Below are positions 26,201 to 38,002 of a DNA stretch of 64,000 nucleotides, in pieces. Position 1 is the stretch's first letter. Each line of letters begins with the position of its first letter. Both the position numbers and the translations under genes were made by a program. The stretch is from NCBI GenBank assembly GCA_019828565.1, contig JAHDYR010000038.1:698735-762734 (forward strand), given 5' to 3'. Source of the DNA: Carpediemonas membranifera BICM. Lineage: Eukaryota; Protista; Fornicata. The notes under the pieces are model-generated. The model was not told the DNA's origin, made no database searches, and was given only the letters and a program-made list of their open reading frames with translations.

Positions 26201-26745
26201 AGTGAGCTCCATCGTTAGCGTATCAGGTTCTATGCCCGCGCTGAGCAGGTACTGGACGACCTGCTCGAGGTCCTGGACGGTGATCGGCGTCTCGCCTCGC
26301 TTGCGGACCTGGATGCCCTCGGGGCCGGGGCGCTCGGAGATTGCGGTGCGGATCTGAGCGTCTACTGCTCTGCAGTCGTCGCTGCGTGAGAATGCAGCCT
26401 CGATACGTACCACTGGCTGTGTAATCATGGAATTTGCAGATCAAACGCGTCAGGCGTGCTGTGTGAGAGAATCGCGCTGCAGCCGTGTTGCTGCTGTTGT
26501 AACGCACCATCTGTGTGAGAATAGCTCCGTGATAGCGTACTTTCGGCAGCTTCGCGTCATCGAGAGTTTGTGTTGCTCGAATGTCGCGTGACGAAAATGG
26601 TCTAAACTCCGCTGCCTCCGCAATACCCCGCGCCGTCAGCATTTACCTGCGCCCGGGCGTCCTCCCCCTCATCAGGTCCCCGGCCGTGACCTTGGTCGAC
26701 TTCAGCACGCTCAGCGGCACCCTCCGCCCCGTAGTCGCCATCGCC
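20726..26745 (-). repeat. Copy A of a ~6 kb inverted segmental duplication (partner 45318..51115)
   Basis: Reverse complement matches 45318..51115 almost base for base, from 'ggcgatgg..actacggggcggagg' to 'gtagttgttgaggt'. Confidence 0.95.
21164..26428 (-). CDS. WD40 propeller + coiled coil + protein kinase + HECT-like + IBR/RING2 (RBR) multidomain protein, intact copy (1754 aa)
   Basis: About 7 WD repeats; YFAK/DREAG/HRDLKPEN/DFE/APEE kinase; HECT-like LGRVLQLML...LTAAQLRALL...RRRFAFHVFG...YSDCAGGARLP; terminal RRCPGCG..YYKDGGCQHMRCRCG (RBR RING2 signature). Confidence 0.88.
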
Positions 26746-28634
26746 GCCGGCGTCATGAGCGGCAGTTGTCCGTCCCTCACGAACGGCGTGACCGAGGGCA
26801 TGTTCTCCCCCCTGGGCGGGGCGGGTGTGCAGGGCTTGGGCGTCCTGACCCGTCCCGGCGTCCTCGGCAGGGCGAATGAGTGCTCCAGGGACCTGCAGAT
26901 CGTGTCCTCCCGCACCTCGAAGCTCATGCTGTTGGCGAACGAGGGCGACACGCTCGCCGTGATCGTAAATATGTCCTGGCCAGAACCAGCTCTGGGGGAT
27001 CCCGCGGGGTCGACGGCCAGCGCAGGGTCCGGCATGGCAGCCATATCGACCAGATCGCCGACAGACCCGGGGACGGCGGGCTGGTCATCCAGCTCAGAGT
27101 AGGTCAGGCCGGCCTCCTCCAGCAGCGCGTCGAGGTCGGGGGTGGATAGGTCGGCGCTGTCGATGCTGTCGAGGAAGGCGGCCTCGTCGAAGGTCCAGAT
27201 CGCGTTGTCGGACTCGGCTGCGATGATTCGCTCGCAGAAGTCGACTGTGGCCCGTGTAATCGGCGTGAAAACCAGCGGCGTCGCCTTGAGGCCGACCGTG
27301 ACCGACGGGGCGAAGTCGGCGAGCTTGGCGTGCAGGTCGACGGGCTCATTGTCATCCTCACCTGACTCTATGGGGACCTCACGCGCGGGCTCGGCAGGGG
27401 TGGGATGGAGAGCAGGCCTCGGCTCCACCAGCCCAGGCGTCCGGTGGTCGACATGTCGCGTGGCGGTCGCAGGTTTGGGTGTCTGGAGTGTGGCCTTGGG
27501 CGGGGCCGTCTCGGGCTTCCTGAGGCTGCTGACCGTGGCGTGTTCCCTGGGCTCCGGTCTGGGAGCCGGCTGGAGGGAGATGGTCGGGCTGTCCTTCGGC
27601 ATGTTCAGCGTCGGCGTGTCCTTCTCGACAAACGACACGCGCCGGGGCAGCTCCCGCGAGGCCTCCTGCTCTACATCGGGCTCACTCTCCGGCGGCGGGG
27701 GCTGGAACACGACCTTCTTCCACTTCCGCTTGCTCTGGCCCCGGTTCTTGGCGGCCTCCCACTCGTCCGCCCTGGCGATGAAGACCTCGGGCAGCGACTG
27801 CTCCGGCCCTGACCCACCAGCCATGAACTTCTCGATGGGATAGGCGAGCTGGCCGGGCCGCTCGATCTGCCACGGCCATGTCTTCCCGAAGTTGAGCTTG
27901 ACCCGCAGCAGAGTGCCGGTCGGGTCGTCGACGACGGTGAACGAAGGGGCGGGGTCACTCGGCTTCTTCCGAACCGCCCGCTGCTTCTGCTTGGGGGACT
28001 GCTTGGGCTCGAGCTTCGGCGCGGCTTTGGGTGCGGGTTTGGCGCGAGTCTCCTCGAAGGCCGCGCGGATGTCGGCCACGTCGACCGTGCGGCGGGGAGG
28101 CTGGGCGGTGGGGTGGGTCGTGTCGACATTGGGTGGAGTCATGCTCTCCAGCGACTGCCGCAGCTTCTCGAGCTCCTTGGCCCTGAAGGCGTCTAGGGCA
28201 GTGTCGTCGAGTCGCTGCGACAGGCGCTCAAGACCCATACGAGCGACGGCGGCGGCCGAGGGCAGATCGTCTGCGGCGATGAAGCCGCCGATACGGCGTA
28301 GGATGAGGTTGCTGCTGAGTGGCGCGACGTGCTTGTCCTCGGCATACAGATAGACGAGCTCGGGATCGACGAACTTCGCTAGCATGAGCAAAAGGCCGGA
28401 GAAGCGGGGATCTTGGCGCGCCTCCGCATCGTCGCTGAACTCATCGAGGGTCATGGTGAGGAATTCCACAACAAGCGACGCTGGGCAAGCCTCCTCGTCT
28501 TCAGTGCCGAATTTGTCGTATGCCTCCTTCGCTACGATGATGAATGCCCGTAGCTCATCGTCTGGGTTCTGCTCTAAGAGCGCACTCAACTTTTCGTCGA
28601 GAACCTCCATTCTGTCTCCAAAGGCCGACTTCAT
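26643..28634 (-). CDS. Divergent Bub1/Mad3 (MadBub)-like checkpoint protein without kinase domain
   Basis: TPR-like N-terminus 'FSDDAEARQDPRF...DPELVYLYAEDKHVA...AAAVARMGLER'; GLEBS-like 'YPIEKFMAGGSGPEQSLPEVFIAR'; ABBA-like 'FTVVDD'; many TP sites; start at ATG 28634 or 28610. Confidence 0.6.
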   Translation of the reverse strand: MKSAFGDRMEVLDEKLSALLEQNPDDELRAFIIVAKEAYDKFGTEDEEACPASLVVEFLTMTLDEFSDDAEARQDPRFSGLLLMLAKFVDPELVYLYAEDKHVAPLSSNLILRRIGGFIAADDLPSAAAVARMGLERLSQRLDDTALDAFRAKELEKLRQSLESMTPPNVDTTHPTAQPPRRTVDVADIRAAFEETRAKPAPKAAPKLEPKQSPKQKQRAVRKKPSDPAPSFTVVDDPTGTLLRVKLNFGKTWPWQIERPGQLAYPIEKFMAGGSGPEQSLPEVFIARADEWEAAKNRGQSKRKWKKVVFQPPPPESEPDVEQEASRELPRRVSFVEKDTPTLNMPKDSPTISLQPAPRPEPREHATVSSLRKPETAPPKATLQTPKPATATRHVDHRTPGLVEPRPALHPTPAEPAREVPIESGEDDNEPVDLHAKLADFAPSVTVGLKATPLVFTPITRATVDFCERIIAAESDNAIWTFDEAAFLDSIDSADLSTPDLDALLEEAGLTYSELDDQPAVPGSVGDLVDMAAMPDPALAVDPAGSPRAGSGQDIFTITASVSPSFANSMSFEVREDTICRSLEHSFALPRTPGRVRTPKPCTPAPPRGENMPSVTPFVRDGQLPLMTPAAMATTGRRVPLSVLKSTKVTAGDLMRGRTPGRR

Positions 28635-28844
28635 TGGAGTCGTGCCGGCCACACAGCTCGGGCCAACCTCCTCAGTGGTGCGTGTGTCTTGTATTAGTAT
28701 GATTGCTTCGCGCTGACCCGGGAGCTTCGCTCTCAACCGACGCCCCGTATTAATAGAGAGCAATCAACGGGAATTGAGGGATAATATGGCCATAAACGGA
28801 TCGATAATCGGGGATAATAGGGTTAATTTACTCATATACGGCAC

Positions 28845-31301: not shown

Positions 31302-34300
31302 ATGGTCATTCTCACTGACTGTGATCTCCAGATCACAGTAGGCGACGTTGAGAGGAAGAAAGCTCGCGAGCGTGCCCGTATTCAGGCCGAAAAGCGCAAG
31401 AAGGAGGAAGAACACGCTGCCGAGAAGAAACGGCGCGAGGAGGCAAGGAGAAAGGAAGCTACCCAGCGTTTCCAGGACAAATTGATGGAAATACAATCCG
31501 AGGTGAAGAGTTCAGCGCACAAGAACCTTGATCGCAAGGCCAAGCGCGAGGCCACCCTGCATCGCAACATGGACGCACTCCTCAAGGCCGGGAAGAACCC
31601 ATACGAGGTCTTCAGACAGCGCGACGTCGAGAAGGAGAAGACACGCCTCCTGAAGGAACGTGATGAGCGGCTTCAGTCAAACCAGGAGGCCGTGGAGCAG
31701 TGGGTCAGGGAGGACGGGGAGCGGATCAAGAGACTCGAGGCCGCAGACAGAGCGAGGAAGGACCAGGAGCGTACTGTGCCGAACTTGGAGCAGATCAGGG
31801 CGGAGCGGGTGGTGGAGCGGCTGTCCTCCGGTGTCGACGGGATCCCCACTCACTCGTTCGGGAGCGGGAAGGCCACCCAGGACATCGTGCTGCGTGCCGA
31901 GAAGGAGCTCAAGCGCATGGCTCGCAAGGCTGGCATGAACCACCGCGAGTTGCTCCAGCCGATCGCCCAAGCCACAGAAACTGCCGCAATCGCCCAGAGA
32001 TCGATGTTCAAGGACGGCGACTTCGAGGACACCAGCGACAACATCGTCCTGGACACCGCGAGCAAGCCCAAGCCCGGGTTCAAGCCCACCACACGCATGC
32101 AGGCGAGGGGCGTCACCCGGGGCATGAACTACACGGCCAGACCACAGGTGACGGCGGGGCGGGTGTTCGAAGGCGCCAGTTACACACCGTCGCCCGCAGT
32201 GGTCGAGTTCACAGACTACTCTCCCGGCAAGTCGTATAAGTTCAAGCTGACACTGACGAACTCGAGTCTGACCCGATCCAGCTTCGTCATCGCAGACCTG
32301 CCCCCGGACGCCGCCAGGGTGTTTGACGTGGAGTACAAGAAGCCCGGCCTGCTTGGAGCTGGTCTGTCGGTGCCCGTCCTGCTCACATTCACCCCGAACA
32401 CACCCAATGACCTCGACGCGGAGCTGGAAGTGCGGTGCGACACGGGCATCCTATACGTCCCTATCAGATGCCGCGGCCGTAAGATCGACCTCCAGCTGTC
32501 CGAGCCCGCCATCGTGTTTCCCCCGGCCTACGTCGGGTCGACCACTCACCGCCTGGTGACGCTGACAAACCACGGTGCCCTTGACGCCGTGTGTCTGGTC
32601 GAGTGGTTCGAGCCGAAGGAGGAGGTTTACGGCAATGCCACACCCACGGCTGCACTCAACCCGCCGAGCCGACTCGGGGCCCGACCTGCACCAGGGAGCT
32701 CCGTGGCCGAGTTCGTATCGGACGTGGCCTCGACCAAGGCGACTCTGGCCCCGGTGGACACGCCCATCGTCGCCTCTCTGGTCCAGGAGATGTCGGGTGA
32801 CGCCCCCGCAGAGGACGACTCCGACGACGAGGAGGGTCTGGGCAATATGGACGACGCCCTCATGCACTCCAAAACCAGCCGCATATTCAGCGTCCCAGCT
32901 CGGTCAGCAACCTCATTCATCGTCGCGTTCAAACCGAAGACGGATGACGAGCTCCACACGATGCTCGCCATCCGGTACAAACCCCAGCTCAGGTCCACTC
33001 TCACGGCGGAGATCGGCGCCTTTGCCCAGCTCAAGAAGCTCCAGGAGATCATGGCCGACCAGGAAGCCCAGGAGACCCGGACAGACAAGGAGGTCGGCAC
33101 CGCTCTGGGCGCTCCTACGGTGCTGTCGATGGTCAGTGAGTCCGCCGAGGTCCAGAAGTCGTTGAAGTACGAGTCGGCGCACTATGGGTCCGTCGACCTG
33201 CACATCAGGGCGGCGGGTGAACCGAATCCGATCTCCGCGGTTGAAGATACAGTCGATTTCCAGACTGTGATCTCCGGTGACACTTATCGGCAGATTGTGA
33301 CATTGCAGAACTCATCACACGTCACTCTGTCGTTCACGGCAAAGATCCCCGCCGACGTGGCCCGGACCGGACTCATTGCTTGCACCCCCAAGTCCGCCTG
33401 GGTCCAGCGGGAATCGACGATGGGCATCGCAGTGAAGCTGACGCCGGACTATGGCAAGACCCAGCAGATAGCCGCGGCACACCCGGACTGGGTTGACGGT
33501 AGCGGCGTTATGAGGGTGCCGATGTCGGTGGCGGTGCCCGGCCAGCCGCTCAAGGTCAGAATTGGCCTTAAACTGCGGGTGACTGAGACGACTGTGCTCG
33601 TGAAGCAACGGGTAGAGACTGTCGTACAGGAGCAGCCTGTGGCGTCGGAAGCAGACGAAGAAAAGCCCGCCGACAACAGCGAGGCCGAGGCCAAGGATGC
33701 CGAAGCCGAGGCTGACCCCGAGGTTGTCGAGGCCGACTCCCCCGCCCCGTCGATCGCCCACACGGGCACGCCCCGCTCCCGCCTGGACTTCGGCACAGTG
33801 TACATCGGGCAGTCCCGGTCTATGGTGGTCGATGTCACGAACACAGCGTTGGTCGAGCAGATTATCAGATTCACTAAGGTGCCACCGGATCTCCGGATTG
33901 TCCCCAATGACGGCATCTTCGCCATACCCGCGCAGACGACCCTGCCGGTCACCTTTGTGTTCATGCCCCGTGCGGTTGCCCCACTTAGCTCAGCTGTCAA
34001 GGTCCAAACAGACCTCGGGTTCGAGACTACAGTTTTTATCGCCGGCAAGTGCATCACACCACCTCTTGTACCCAGACCTCAGCTGCTACTGCTGCCCGCC
34101 GTAGCCTGGGACGACAACGTCGAGACGACGCTCACCCTGACGAATGACGGCAACGCCCCCCGCTGGTTCGACCTCGCCCTCCCCGCGGCCGACTGCCCCT
34201 TGAGCTTCACACCGCGGGCCGGTAACATTCCCGCGAAGTCCTCGCTGAAGGTGATCGTCAAGTTCAGGCCCAAGCGGGGCCACTTCGACCCCGACGCCCT

Positions 34301-35633
34301 TGCCCAGTGGGCGACCTTCATGGCCCACGGGTCATACAAATTCGTCCGGATTGACGACCGGCCCCGGCCCAAGGGCGAGCCGGTCGGCCCAGCCCTGACG
34401 TTCTCCATCCCACTGTTCGCGTCAGACCCCATCGACATGGCCACAGCTGGGGCCACACTCGCAGCAAACCCCGCCTGCTCGGCACAAGCCCAGCTCATCC
34501 AGCTCGAGACAATCGTGGTCGAGCCGCCTCTCTTCGCCCAACTGCCCGACCAGGCGGTGGGGGACGGGCAGGCTCAGATCACACTCGACTTCGGGGACGT
34601 AGCCATCGGAAGGAAGGTCGTGCGGTCGTTCCTGCTGAGTACAAACGGAAACGCCATGGTGTCTCTCAATACCGAGCACCCCCACGCTTCTGGTATTTTC
34701 GAGGTGCTCAACTCCATATGGAGCAGGAATGTGACGTCCCAGCAGTCGCTTGAAGTCCGAGTGCAGTTTTCGCCCCACGAAGCTGTGGAGGAGCTCGGCC
34801 AGCTCATGGTACGCTCCTCTGACGGCCACGGCGTCACTGCCAACCTCAGGGGCCGTGGCGCCCTGCCGCGCCTGGTGGTCGACCCCGAGGTGACCTTCAT
34901 CGCTTTCCCAGGCTCCATGCCGTTGTCTGAGTCGACCCGCACGATCAAGCTGAAGAACATTACCAGCCTGACGTGCACACTGAAGGCTGAGGTGGTCGAC
35001 CCCTCGTGCATCGACCCCACTGGCCCCGTGTTCATCGCCCAGCCGGGTGAGACGGAGGTCGGGCCGCACGAGGAGGTCGAGGTGACGCTGCTCGCGTCGG
35101 CCCGGACGGCGGGGATCTACACGGCAGCCGTGCGTCTCATAGTAGACGAGATCCACCTCGTCAAGGAGATCCCGCTCGCCCTGCATGTGCACAACAAGCC
35201 CCTGGTGCTCTCATCGAACCTGCTCGAGAGCGCGGAGGACATTGCAGCGCTACGGGCCTCAGCCAAGCTCGGCGGCCGGTGCCCTGTCATCCTGTTCGAC
35301 GACAACTTCAAGGACGAGACGGCCAATGGCGAGTCGACCCGCACTGTCCTCATCCGCAACGGGGCGGCTCCAGCGAAGTCGACCTCGTCATGGGAGATCG
35401 AGGCGCCCACCCTCGAGGGGCTGACCATTGCCCCGCTCAAGGGCACGCTCGACTCCGGGGCGACGGCCACAGTCACGATGAAGTTCAAGCCGCCCGCCCT
35501 GAACCCCGAGTCCGCTGAGTACCATCTGAAGGCAGACCATTGGGCGACGTCCAAGGTGAGCGTGATGCTGACCCATACGGCCGACGACGTCGAGCGGCGC
35601 GTCGTCAATGTTCGGGCGTTCCTGGGCCGGTGA
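31302..35633 (+). CDS. CFAP74: Cilia- and flagella-associated protein 74-like (N-terminal coiled coil + multiple ASH domains)
   Basis: 'LLKAGKNPYEVFR' and 'PSPAVVEFTDYSPGKSYKFKLTLTNSS'; repeated LDFG.V..G......N ASH domains; true 5' end may involve small introns. Confidence 0.75.
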   Translation: MVILTDCDLQITVGDVERKKARERARIQAEKRKKEEEHAAEKKRREEARRKEATQRFQDKLMEIQSEVKSSAHKNLDRKAKREATLHRNMDALLKAGKNPYEVFRQRDVEKEKTRLLKERDERLQSNQEAVEQWVREDGERIKRLEAADRARKDQERTVPNLEQIRAERVVERLSSGVDGIPTHSFGSGKATQDIVLRAEKELKRMARKAGMNHRELLQPIAQATETAAIAQRSMFKDGDFEDTSDNIVLDTASKPKPGFKPTTRMQARGVTRGMNYTARPQVTAGRVFEGASYTPSPAVVEFTDYSPGKSYKFKLTLTNSSLTRSSFVIADLPPDAARVFDVEYKKPGLLGAGLSVPVLLTFTPNTPNDLDAELEVRCDTGILYVPIRCRGRKIDLQLSEPAIVFPPAYVGSTTHRLVTLTNHGALDAVCLVEWFEPKEEVYGNATPTAALNPPSRLGARPAPGSSVAEFVSDVASTKATLAPVDTPIVASLVQEMSGDAPAEDDSDDEEGLGNMDDALMHSKTSRIFSVPARSATSFIVAFKPKTDDELHTMLAIRYKPQLRSTLTAEIGAFAQLKKLQEIMADQEAQETRTDKEVGTALGAPTVLSMVSESAEVQKSLKYESAHYGSVDLHIRAAGEPNPISAVEDTVDFQTVISGDTYRQIVTLQNSSHVTLSFTAKIPADVARTGLIACTPKSAWVQRESTMGIAVKLTPDYGKTQQIAAAHPDWVDGSGVMRVPMSVAVPGQPLKVRIGLKLRVTETTVLVKQRVETVVQEQPVASEADEEKPADNSEAEAKDAEAEADPEVVEADSPAPSIAHTGTPRSRLDFGTVYIGQSRSMVVDVTNTALVEQIIRFTKVPPDLRIVPNDGIFAIPAQTTLPVTFVFMPRAVAPLSSAVKVQTDLGFETTVFIAGKCITPPLVPRPQLLLLPAVAWDDNVETTLTLTNDGNAPRWFDLALPAADCPLSFTPRAGNIPAKSSLKVIVKFRPKRGHFDPDALAQWATFMAHGSYKFVRIDDRPRPKGEPVGPALTFSIPLFASDPIDMATAGATLAANPACSAQAQLIQLETIVVEPPLFAQLPDQAVGDGQAQITLDFGDVAIGRKVVRSFLLSTNGNAMVSLNTEHPHASGIFEVLNSIWSRNVTSQQSLEVRVQFSPHEAVEELGQLMVRSSDGHGVTANLRGRGALPRLVVDPEVTFIAFPGSMPLSESTRTIKLKNITSLTCTLKAEVVDPSCIDPTGPVFIAQPGETEVGPHEEVEVTLLASARTAGIYTAAVRLIVDEIHLVKEIPLALHVHNKPLVLSSNLLESAEDIAALRASAKLGGRCPVILFDDNFKDETANGESTRTVLIRNGAAPAKSTSSWEIEAPTLEGLTIAPLKGTLDSGATATVTMKFKPPALNPESAEYHLKADHWATSKVSVMLTHTADDVERRVVNVRAFLGR

Positions 35634-35779
35634 GGTAGGGGGTGTATGTATGTTAAAGTTCGTGCCATGTAATTCTGGTTCAGACGTGTATATAGTCTCC
35701 AACAGTCATCAGCACCGATCAGACAGGCGACTATCTCCTTTATTACAATGGGGTGAGCTACGATGACAGGCCCCCTCGT

Positions 35780-36943
35780 CTACTTGGGCAGCGCCAGACA
35801 CTCGGCGAACCCGGCCAGCTCCATCTGCACCTGGCCCTGCGCCGCCTCGAACATCGCCCGCACCTTGGCGCTGCGGGCCTCATAAAACTCAGCGAGCTTG
35901 GCCATCTCGGCCTTGAGCTCCTCGATTTCCCGCTGCAGCCGCTGGCGTGACTCCCGCAAGCTCTCCTCCTTCCGCTGCTCGTCCGCATCGCCAGACCCGC
36001 CGGTCCCACTGACGACGGCGGCCTTGAGGGCGTCCAGCTGCTTGTTGAGCTGCTCTATAGTCTTCTGCCGGACCTTCACCGTCGCCTGGTGCGACGTGAG
36101 CTCCTGCATCCCCGAGTCGAGCGTCTGGGTGAGCTCATGGATGTCGTGGTCGAGCTCCTCCACGGTGTCCACCCGCTCCTCGATCAGCAGGCCCTGTACA
36201 CGGTTCAGGGTCTCGTTGAACTGCATCAGCTCAACCTCACCCTGCTGCAGCTCGGTGCGGAGCCGCCTCAGTTGCTCCCGGACAGCCTTCTGGTTGGCCT
36301 CGAGCTCGGTATTCGATGCCCGGAGCTCTTCTGGGTCCATTACGAGAAGGTCGTGCTTCTCGCCGAGCTGCTGCCTCACCGCCTCGTCCTCTTGGATGCA
36401 CCGCTCGACTGCCTCCTGTCTCTGCCGCTCGCTGGTGACCTTGCGTCTCTCCTGCTCGAGCTCGCGGCTGACCTCCTCGTCTTTGATGGCAGCCCGCTCC
36501 TGGTTCTCGCGGAGTTCGTCCCGTCTGGCCTGGGCGTCTGAGATGACCTGATTCACAGAGTCGTGCTGCACTGCCACCTTCACCACAAGCTCACGCGCTG
36601 CTAGGTAACCGAAGATCTGGCTCAAGGCCTCTTCGAAGCTCTCGCCTTTGTAAAACATTGGGCGGTGGAGCGCGCGGTCCTTGGATTGTTCGGCGCTGCC
36701 TGTGGTGAAGCCTAACTTGGTCATAAGCGTAGAGAAGTTCATGAATTGAACATGTAAGCTTGGAGACATGTCCTCATTGCCTTGAGACACCAGAAGGTTG
36801 CCCAAACACGCAAGAATGTCCCTTTTGTCAACGATGGTGAGGGATGAGAGCGCACAGTCATACCGGCCCATGAATGTTTCGGATATTCTTAGCCTTAGAT
36901 CATCAGCTGATAACTTAGGGAACTTCATTCGCCCTGTGCTCAT
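35780..36943 (-). CDS. Candidate highly divergent Nuf2 (Ndc80 complex subunit)
   Basis: N-terminal FPKLSADDL (Nuf2 FP.L...EI); 'ALSQIFGYLAARE' (LS..INF..FRE); coiled coil broken by 'LVMDPEELR' (IV.SPE.L); 387 aa. Confidence 0.55.
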   Translation of the reverse strand: MSTGRMKFPKLSADDLRLRISETFMGRYDCALSSLTIVDKRDILACLGNLLVSQGNEDMSPSLHVQFMNFSTLMTKLGFTTGSAEQSKDRALHRPMFYKGESFEEALSQIFGYLAARELVVKVAVQHDSVNQVISDAQARRDELRENQERAAIKDEEVSRELEQERRKVTSERQRQEAVERCIQEDEAVRQQLGEKHDLLVMDPEELRASNTELEANQKAVREQLRRLRTELQQGEVELMQFNETLNRVQGLLIEERVDTVEELDHDIHELTQTLDSGMQELTSHQATVKVRQKTIEQLNKQLDALKAAVVSGTGGSGDADEQRKEESLRESRQRLQREIEELKAEMAKLAEFYEARSAKVRAMFEAAQGQVQMELAGFAECLALPK

Positions 36944-37093
36944 ACTTTTGGCTTTGGCGCTTTTCTGGCAAAACTTTTCTGCTCCGAGCCATCAGCCAGG
37001 CTTTATGGTGTGCTTCCGACCTGGGAGGAGCATGGACGTGCGCTGGTAGACGTTTCAAAAATTCGCACTTTAGAGCTCGAAACGACCGCGAGG

Positions 37094-38002
37094 ATGGATA
37101 AGTCCAACGAGGACCCATTCAAACCAACCGAATTATTGAAGAGACTCCGTTCATCTAGTATAGCTTCTCGGAATACATCGCCGACGCGTTCAAACTTTGG
37201 CGGGCACGCTGGTGATCGGTCCGATGTTCAGAGCATGTACGCACAGTCTTTCCGTCAAAGTAGGAGTGTCCTGTATACACAAGGCGATTTTAGATCTGGA
37301 CGCGGAATTTCACGGCATGAGCTTGCCAGGCTGGAGGGTTCAATCGAAACCAACACGAGCGAGCTTGAAATCGTCCGCAGAGCGCATGAAGACACCCGGA
37401 AGGAGATGTCTCGCATCCGCACGGAGATTGCTAGCATGCAGCACAAGATCACCGAGACGCAGGACACCGTCCGCGCCCAGACGTCCCGAGTGGCCGTGCT
37501 CGACGCCGACAACAAGAAGTTGCAGCAAGAGGCCATCCAACTCCGCGAGCTGATCCCCAAGAAGATCGAGGAGCTTGTCGGGGTGGCCGAGTCTACCGTC
37601 GAGCAGCTGATGGAGGTCAGGGCCGCCGCCCGCACCCCCTGCCCCGATCCCTCTCCAATCCTCCCCACAGCATGGGAGAGCGAGCCCGCCTACCCCCCAG
37701 CGTCCCAGGGCTCGGGCCAGTGGAGCACAGCCGACCCCCAGCCCTCCATGACCCTGGGGCCTGAGGGGGTGGGGCGGACTGGAGCACCGGGTTCTGGTGG
37801 CGGATACGAGTTATCGTCCACACAGAAGTTCGTACTGCCCCCGTACGGGAATCGGGGCGGCGAGTCGGGCACCAGGCGAGCACCGAAGAGCGCGAGTCCT
37901 CAGAAGCGGCTCCGGTCACCGCCCAAGAGGATGATGCCGCCGCCGAGCTACGAGAGCACGAACAGGGTGCCGACGTCGAACCTGACGCTGACCCTGGTCT
38001 GA
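37094..38002 (+). CDS. Hypothetical coiled-coil protein with Pro/Ser-rich tail
   Basis: Long ORF with heptad segment; host-like codon usage. Confidence 0.6.
   Translation: MDKSNEDPFKPTELLKRLRSSSIASRNTSPTRSNFGGHAGDRSDVQSMYAQSFRQSRSVLYTQGDFRSGRGISRHELARLEGSIETNTSELEIVRRAHEDTRKEMSRIRTEIASMQHKITETQDTVRAQTSRVAVLDADNKKLQQEAIQLRELIPKKIEELVGVAESTVEQLMEVRAAARTPCPDPSPILPTAWESEPAYPPASQGSGQWSTADPQPSMTLGPEGVGRTGAPGSGGGYELSSTQKFVLPPYGNRGGESGTRRAPKSASPQKRLRSPPKRMMPPPSYESTNRVPTSNLTLTLV

Follow-up and report, generated by a model that had tools for sequence, protein, structure and literature searches.

A candidate gene for a highly divergent Nuf2 in Carpediemonas membranifera, a lineage reported to lack the Ndc80 complex

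Introduction

The Ndc80 complex is a set of four proteins that ties chromosomes to spindle microtubules. Its Nuf2 subunit, which measures 464 amino acids in human and 451 in yeast, consists of a calponin-homology (CH) head, a coiled coil that pairs with that of Ndc80 and a C-terminal part at which it joins Spc24/Spc25. Mad1, Mad2, MadBub, Bub3, Aurora and CenpA normally act at an outer kinetochore. CH heads of the NN type occur in Ndc80 itself and in IFT81 (PF18383), IFT54, IFT57, CLUAP1, HAUS6/7 and CCDC22/93; IFT81 comprises about 650-700 amino acids and has long, IFT74-binding coiled coils. These NN-CH heads form a divergent CH subfamily that is thought to be specialised for the binding of microtubules or tubulin (PMC6601020).

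The genome of Carpediemonas membranifera has a size of 24.2 Mb in 69 contigs and a GC content of 57.1% (Table 1 of PMC8516963). The four Ndc80-complex proteins were all described as absent, and Carpediemonas as the only such lineage besides the kinetoplastids (PMC8516963). Correspondingly, the cells for Ndc80, Nuf2, Spc24 and Spc25 are empty for both C. membranifera and C. frisia in Supplementary Data 4 of that paper. The searches behind this result were HMM-based and drew on Pfam, eggNOG, kinetochore HMMs from earlier publications and profiles enriched in metamonad sequences; neither HHpred nor Phyre is mentioned in the supplement (PMC8516963). The authors asked how chromosomes of Carpediemonas attach to microtubules at all (PMC8516963). 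According to a paper from 2024 the loss of the complex still appears to hold, and our literature search found no later paper that revises it. The first-pass annotation of the locus described here had noted that the complex, including Nuf2, was reported as undetectable in C. membranifera, and the published statement and the empty Nuf2 cell bear this out.

The same table lists Nuf2, Spc24 and Spc25 in all three Giardia columns, in which the Ndc80 cell is empty (Supplementary Data 4, PMC8516963). This indicates that HMM detection of the complex is already incomplete in other fornicates. In addition, C. membranifera retains Mad1, Mad2, MadBub, Bub3, BugZ, Aurora, INCENP and a CenpA candidate (PMC8516963). 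The gap in Giardia and the retention of these kinetochore and checkpoint proteins raise the prior probability of hidden subunits in Carpediemonas. Subunits of the complex in Plasmodium and Toxoplasma, which HMM surveys had reported as lost, proved to be extremely divergent but conventional in proteomics, profile-profile searches and AlphaFold2 (AF2) analyses (PMC11633173). These subunits and the missing Ndc80 of Giardia resemble the case of Carpediemonas in that HMM surveys reported a loss. The apicomplexan subunits have experimental support, whereas the protein described in the following is known from sequence and models.

Results

A single-copy gene between a ciliary and a coiled-coil neighbor

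The window analyzed here is a stretch of 64,000 nucleotides at positions 698735-762734 of contig C26. Genome-wide searches covered the whole assembly of 24,237,836 bases in 69 contigs. The first-pass annotation had raised Carpediemonas as a possible host, and the DNA is almost certainly that of C. membranifera; a candidate Nuf2 had been placed by the annotation at 35780-36943. An uninterrupted open reading frame of 387 amino acids from ATG to stop was found at exactly this position (35780..36943, minus strand; stop codon at 35780-35782) and represents a single-exon gene in the frame with the best codon usage. Its codon-usage score of 0.385 is the highest of the six frames, with the runner-up at 0.069, and its GC contents at the three codon positions (0.66/0.36/0.79) are in line with those of the neighboring genes. 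The long open reading frame on the opposite strand encodes Ser/Cys-rich junk. If translation began instead at Met6, whose ATG is at 36926-36928 (minus strand), the product would comprise 382 amino acids, and an identical product starting from Met6, also of 382 residues, is present in a public protein collection as a singleton on a contig of 1,374,264 bases. No paralogue was detected in a search across the genome. The only other genomic match, located on contig C65 with an E value of 0.07, was treated as noise. The candidate is a real, coding, single-copy gene. An AATAAA hexamer is located at window positions 35739-35744 (minus strand), 36-41 nucleotides 3' of the stop codon, and may represent a poly(A) signal.

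The gene is arranged tail-to-tail with a gene for a CFAP74-like ciliary protein and head-to-head with an uncharacterized coiled-coil open reading frame. The CFAP74-like protein (1443 amino acids; window 31302-35633, plus strand) contains ASH, Ig_CFAP74 and Ig_CFAP65 domains, which were identified with Pfam at E values of about 1e-24. This gene is convergent with the candidate, and 146 bases separate the two stop codons. The divergent neighbor (330 amino acids; window 37010-38002, plus strand) harbors a short coiled coil and a DUF7491 match below threshold (E 2e-5, 25 bits, cut-off 30). As its listed GTG start lies 67 bases from the ATG of the candidate, the promoter region common to the two genes would be very short. 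Elsewhere in the window, an open reading frame of 706 amino acids (26643-28763, minus strand) shows a weak match to Mad3_BUB1_I (E 0.036, 14.4 bits, cut-off 31.4). A single MadBub, J8273_3529, is recorded for C. membranifera in the genome paper (PMC8516963).

Protein layout and sequence motifs

In the predicted protein, an N-terminal head is followed by a shaft that is kinked once and measures about 190 residues; a flexible hinge connects this shaft to the last helix, which is about 65 residues long. The globular head, a candidate NN-type CH domain, spans residues 1 to about 125 (36569..36943, minus strand); it is non-repetitive and near-neutral (pI 7.8), and no disordered basic tail precedes it. 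The coiled coil that follows comprises about 260 residues and is broken twice. Its first segment, covering about residues 126-194 (36362..36568, minus strand), is highly charged according to the heptad and charge profile. The second segment, residues 204-312 (36008..36334, minus strand), and the C-terminal helix, residues 319-383 (35795..35989, minus strand), were delimited by the sequence profile and the AF2 model, in which the Gly-rich linker GTGGSG between them (residues 313-318; 35990..36007, minus strand) is non-helical. Overall confidence of the full-length AF2 model is low, with the helices 103-194, 204-312 and 319-383 at pLDDT 70-85 and the first of them at 70-80. With its head at the extreme N-terminus and a coiled coil of about 250-300 residues behind it, the protein has the layout of Nuf2, and the position of the C-terminal helix appears to be the one at which Nuf2 would join Spc24/Spc25. 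The combination of a head and a broken coiled coil fits Nuf2, but it is also a generic shape.

Three short motifs that the first-pass annotation had named were found in the order given there. The motif FPKL (residues 8-11; 36911..36922, minus strand) is located near the N-terminus. The motif LSQIFGYLAARE (residues 107-118; 36590..36625, minus strand) belongs to the last helix of the head, which runs on into the coiled coil; the AF2 model is helical from residue 103 onward and includes this motif. VMDPEEL (residues 201-207; 36323..36343, minus strand) is a proline-containing break of the coiled coil, and in the AF2 model residues 195-203 are non-helical, with pLDDT values below 50 for residues 193-202. 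The numbers of occurrences expected in 387 residues from the composition of the protein itself amount to 0.018 for the FPKL type, 9e-6 for the LSQIFGYLAARE type and 6e-4 for the VMDPEEL type, figures that do not constitute a test statistic because the patterns were drawn up only once the motifs had been seen. The three motifs are not artefacts of composition.

The same annotation had regarded these motifs as landmarks of Nuf2. The human and yeast proteins agree with this assignment. The putative counterparts are ...SFPRY..., LSGIINFIHFRE and IVDSPEKL in human Nuf2 and ...VFPIL... and LSAVVNYARFRE in the yeast protein, and FPKL would thus resemble the N-terminus of Nuf2. In the Nuf2 motif LS..xNF..FRE, the conserved N and F are replaced by G and A in the candidate. 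Database comparisons did not confirm the assignment: the Pfam Nuf2 profile matched none of the fragments carrying the three motifs, and no Nuf2 chain in the PDB matched the FPKL or the LSQIFGYLAARE fragment. For the LSQIFGYLAARE fragment, Pfam returned only a weak, F-box-like noise match.

Sequence, profile and fold searches

The Pfam profile for Nuf2 (PF03800) gave no match at E<=10 to the whole protein, to residues 1-140, to ten fragments of it or to the six-frame translation of the genome. Such a negative result concerns detection by sequence profile and leaves room for a relative at the level of the fold. Pfam searches with the entire sequence, its head and the ten fragments returned coiled-coil or noise matches alone, and no match of PF18595 stood out from coiled-coil noise. 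A phmmer search of the PDB sequences with the whole protein, residues 1-140 and the FPKL and LSQIFGYLAARE fragments recovered no Nuf2 chain and nothing else of relevance. In a word search of 5.8 billion clustered proteins, both the whole protein and the region 1-140 matched only the protein itself. With the head as query, an exhaustive phmmer search of 1.84 billion representatives, among which the Nuf2 proteins of Giardia and Kipferlia are presumably included, recovered only the protein itself and one bacterial tandem-repeat protein; the latter was rejected as spurious, since eight repeats add up to its score. A scan of metagenome contigs for the locus recovered no relative, and a look-up of encoding contigs was blank as well. 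Thus, protein clusters, representatives and metagenome contigs provided no relative on which orthology could be based by alignment, tree or reciprocal matches.

Six-frame searches of the genome with the Pfam profiles Nuf2 and Ndc80_HEC produced zero candidates, and those with Spc25, Spc24, Nuf2_DHR10-like, NDC80_loop and DUF5595 produced nothing or coiled-coil noise. A weak match to Spc24 (E 0.004, below the cut-off) in a coiled-coil open reading frame of 522 amino acids on contig C24 was rejected, as neither its size nor its layout is that of Spc24. This open reading frame (1012-2580 of the local stretch, minus strand) probably encodes an axonemal coiled-coil protein. The same procedure recovered IFT57 (C4:242884-243735, E 1e-30) and Cluap1 (C1:1056884-1057648, E 1e-33), which indicates that six-frame Pfam searches work on this genome. 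The profiles IFT81_CH (PF18383) and MIP-T3, which represents the head of IFT54, matched nothing in the genome of this flagellate. The CH heads of IFT81 and IFT54 have therefore either been lost or diverged beyond the reach of HMMs.

Since no relative and hence no alignment was available, AF2 was run on the single sequence. The head alone was modelled with beta strands at a pLDDT of 50.8, whereas within the full-length model it was all-helical with a pLDDT below 50, so that the two models disagree. With pLDDT values below 51, fold searches with these head models are meaningless and returned only noise.

Comparison of language-model features

The protein was compared with the 7.7 million clusters of the ESM Atlas by means of 256 features. 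With the complete sequence as query, Nuf2 (PF03800) accounted for 26 of the 30 nearest clusters, with a top score of 0.95 and 197 of the 256 features in common. The Nuf2 clusters reached 0.94-0.95, compared to 0.85-0.86 for Ndc80 and 0.84 for IFT81_CH, the other nearest families. The matched Nuf2 clusters are 399-464 amino acids long and thus close in length to the 387 residues of the candidate. When residues 1-140 were used without the coiled coil, Nuf2 clusters occupied ranks 1-5 and 7 with a score of 0.90 and 173 common features; the calibration of such scores covers whole proteins. The next families were IFT81_CH (0.86) and Ndc80 (0.82), and every family listed has an NN-CH head.

The Atlas holds a model of the candidate with a mean pLDDT of 0.61. 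Its sole structural match in the N-terminal part is to a Nuf2 cluster, in which 118 residues were aligned with residues 6-134 of the candidate at a TM score of 0.53, normalised by the model of the matched cluster. This cluster is also the nearest one by the features of the head. In calibrations of the Atlas comparison, a score of 0.95 was reached by about 1 shuffled protein in 100, and at least 170 features were common to about nine tenths of true family members as against 1-2 in 10 chance hits. Shuffled proteins reached 0.9 in 4-10% of the searches, and a third of them obtained ten top matches from the same family. Features and models derived from ESM belong to one family of methods; they were counted as a single source, and all positive evidence for Nuf2 comes from this source.

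Discussion

Comparison of the candidate with Nuf2 (PF03800; human NUF2, yeast Nuf2p) reveals several common traits. In both, a head at the very N-terminus, which is CH-like in Nuf2 and putatively so in the candidate, leads directly into a long coiled coil that is broken at a proline, and a helix forms the C-terminal part. The candidate is close in length to the Nuf2 clusters, and by its features Nuf2 ranks nearest, both for the entire protein and for the head. The location of the head at the extreme N-terminus, where no basic tail precedes it, is shared with Nuf2 and differs from Ndc80. On the other hand, the candidate lacks detectable sequence or profile similarity to Nuf2 and is shorter than the human or the yeast protein. 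Other NN-CH proteins share with it the likeness of the head, with IFT81_CH and Ndc80 next in rank, but they differ in their lower feature scores, their lengths and their domain layouts.

Based on these results, the gene is best regarded as encoding a very divergent Nuf2 orthologue, a reading to which we assign a probability of roughly 0.55. The assignment of the head to the NN-CH domains is firmer and probably correct. The homology proposed in the first-pass annotation is supported by the language-model features and the Atlas model only; the HMM and phmmer searches do not support it. That annotation had also asked whether the head fits another NN-CH family better, and on this point the result mildly favors Nuf2 over IFT81 and Ndc80. 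Because the search with the PF03800 profile returned no match and the AF2 pLDDT of the head stayed below 51, the protein is not filed as a confirmed member of PF03800.

Two other explanations have to be weighed against a divergent Nuf2. The candidate could be a protein that combines an NN-CH head with a coiled coil and is not an orthologue of Nuf2, for example a lineage-specific microtubule binder of cilia, basal bodies or centrosomes that is related to the IFT81 or IFT54 heads or resembles HAUS or CCDC22/93 proteins. Binding of such a protein to tubulin or microtubules would then occur away from the kinetochore. The second rank of IFT81_CH for the head alone is in favor of this explanation, as is the finding that the CH heads of IFT81 and IFT54 are unaccounted for in the genome, whereas the features of the whole protein place Nuf2 ahead of IFT81. 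A head split off from IFT81 would hardly be expected to look like a protein of 387 residues with a coiled coil of 260 residues of its own, given that IFT81 is much longer; neither the protein nor the genome matched PF18383, and the scores of IFT81 stayed behind those of Nuf2 for the head and for the whole protein. IFT57 and Cluap1 are encoded by separate genes elsewhere in the genome, and HAUS, CCDC22/93 and FAM98 are absent from the families listed in the two Atlas searches. The adjoining CFAP74-like gene might hint at a ciliary function, but adjacency means little in a eukaryote. Altogether, an NN-CH protein other than Nuf2 appears rather unlikely.

The candidate could also be an orphan coiled-coil protein that is unrelated to Nuf2, in which case the likeness would result from its general shape and from short motifs selected post hoc. 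The sequence and profile searches, which produced no statistically significant match to any family, agree with an orphan, and AF2 recognized no fold in the head. Many open reading frames were scanned at the outset, which entails a large look-elsewhere effect, and the calibration with shuffled proteins shows how often high scores and uniform top matches arise by chance. An orphan is harder to reconcile with the behavior of the head, which even without the coiled coil lands only on NN-CH families among the 7.7 million clusters. A score of 0.95 with 197 common features lies in the range reported for true family members, and one and the same Nuf2 cluster is nearest whether head features or the shape of the Atlas model are compared. 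We therefore consider an unrelated orphan unlikely.

For a divergent Nuf2, we infer a CH fold, orthology, partners within the complex and a role at the kinetochore. The protein most likely works like Nuf2, as one half of a pair of CH heads on a coiled-coil rod. By analogy with the known complex, the head of about 125 residues would adopt the fold of an NN-type CH domain and pack onto the corresponding domain of an Ndc80 that has diverged just as far, and this pair of heads would sit at the microtubule-binding tip. The coiled coil of about 190 residues would pair in parallel with that of Ndc80 and be interrupted at the proline of VMDPEEL. Beyond the Gly-rich hinge, the last helix would join Spc24/Spc25-like RWD proteins, which in turn would fasten the rod at the inner kinetochore. 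It is possible, and we propose it only tentatively, that Carpediemonas keeps a complete set of extremely diverged Ndc80-complex subunits which includes the candidate Nuf2 and is invisible to HMM searches.

A concrete candidate for Nuf2 makes the question of how chromosomes of Carpediemonas attach to microtubules testable. If the candidate is a Nuf2 orthologue, the reported loss of the Ndc80 complex reflects a limit in the sensitivity of HMM-based surveys, and the same caution would apply to the losses of ORC/Cdc6 that were reported alongside. If a complete, diverged set of subunits is present, the kinetoplastids would again stand alone among eukaryotes in lacking a conventional microtubule coupler, and the Carpediemonas lineage would represent an extreme case of sequence drift in the kinetochore.
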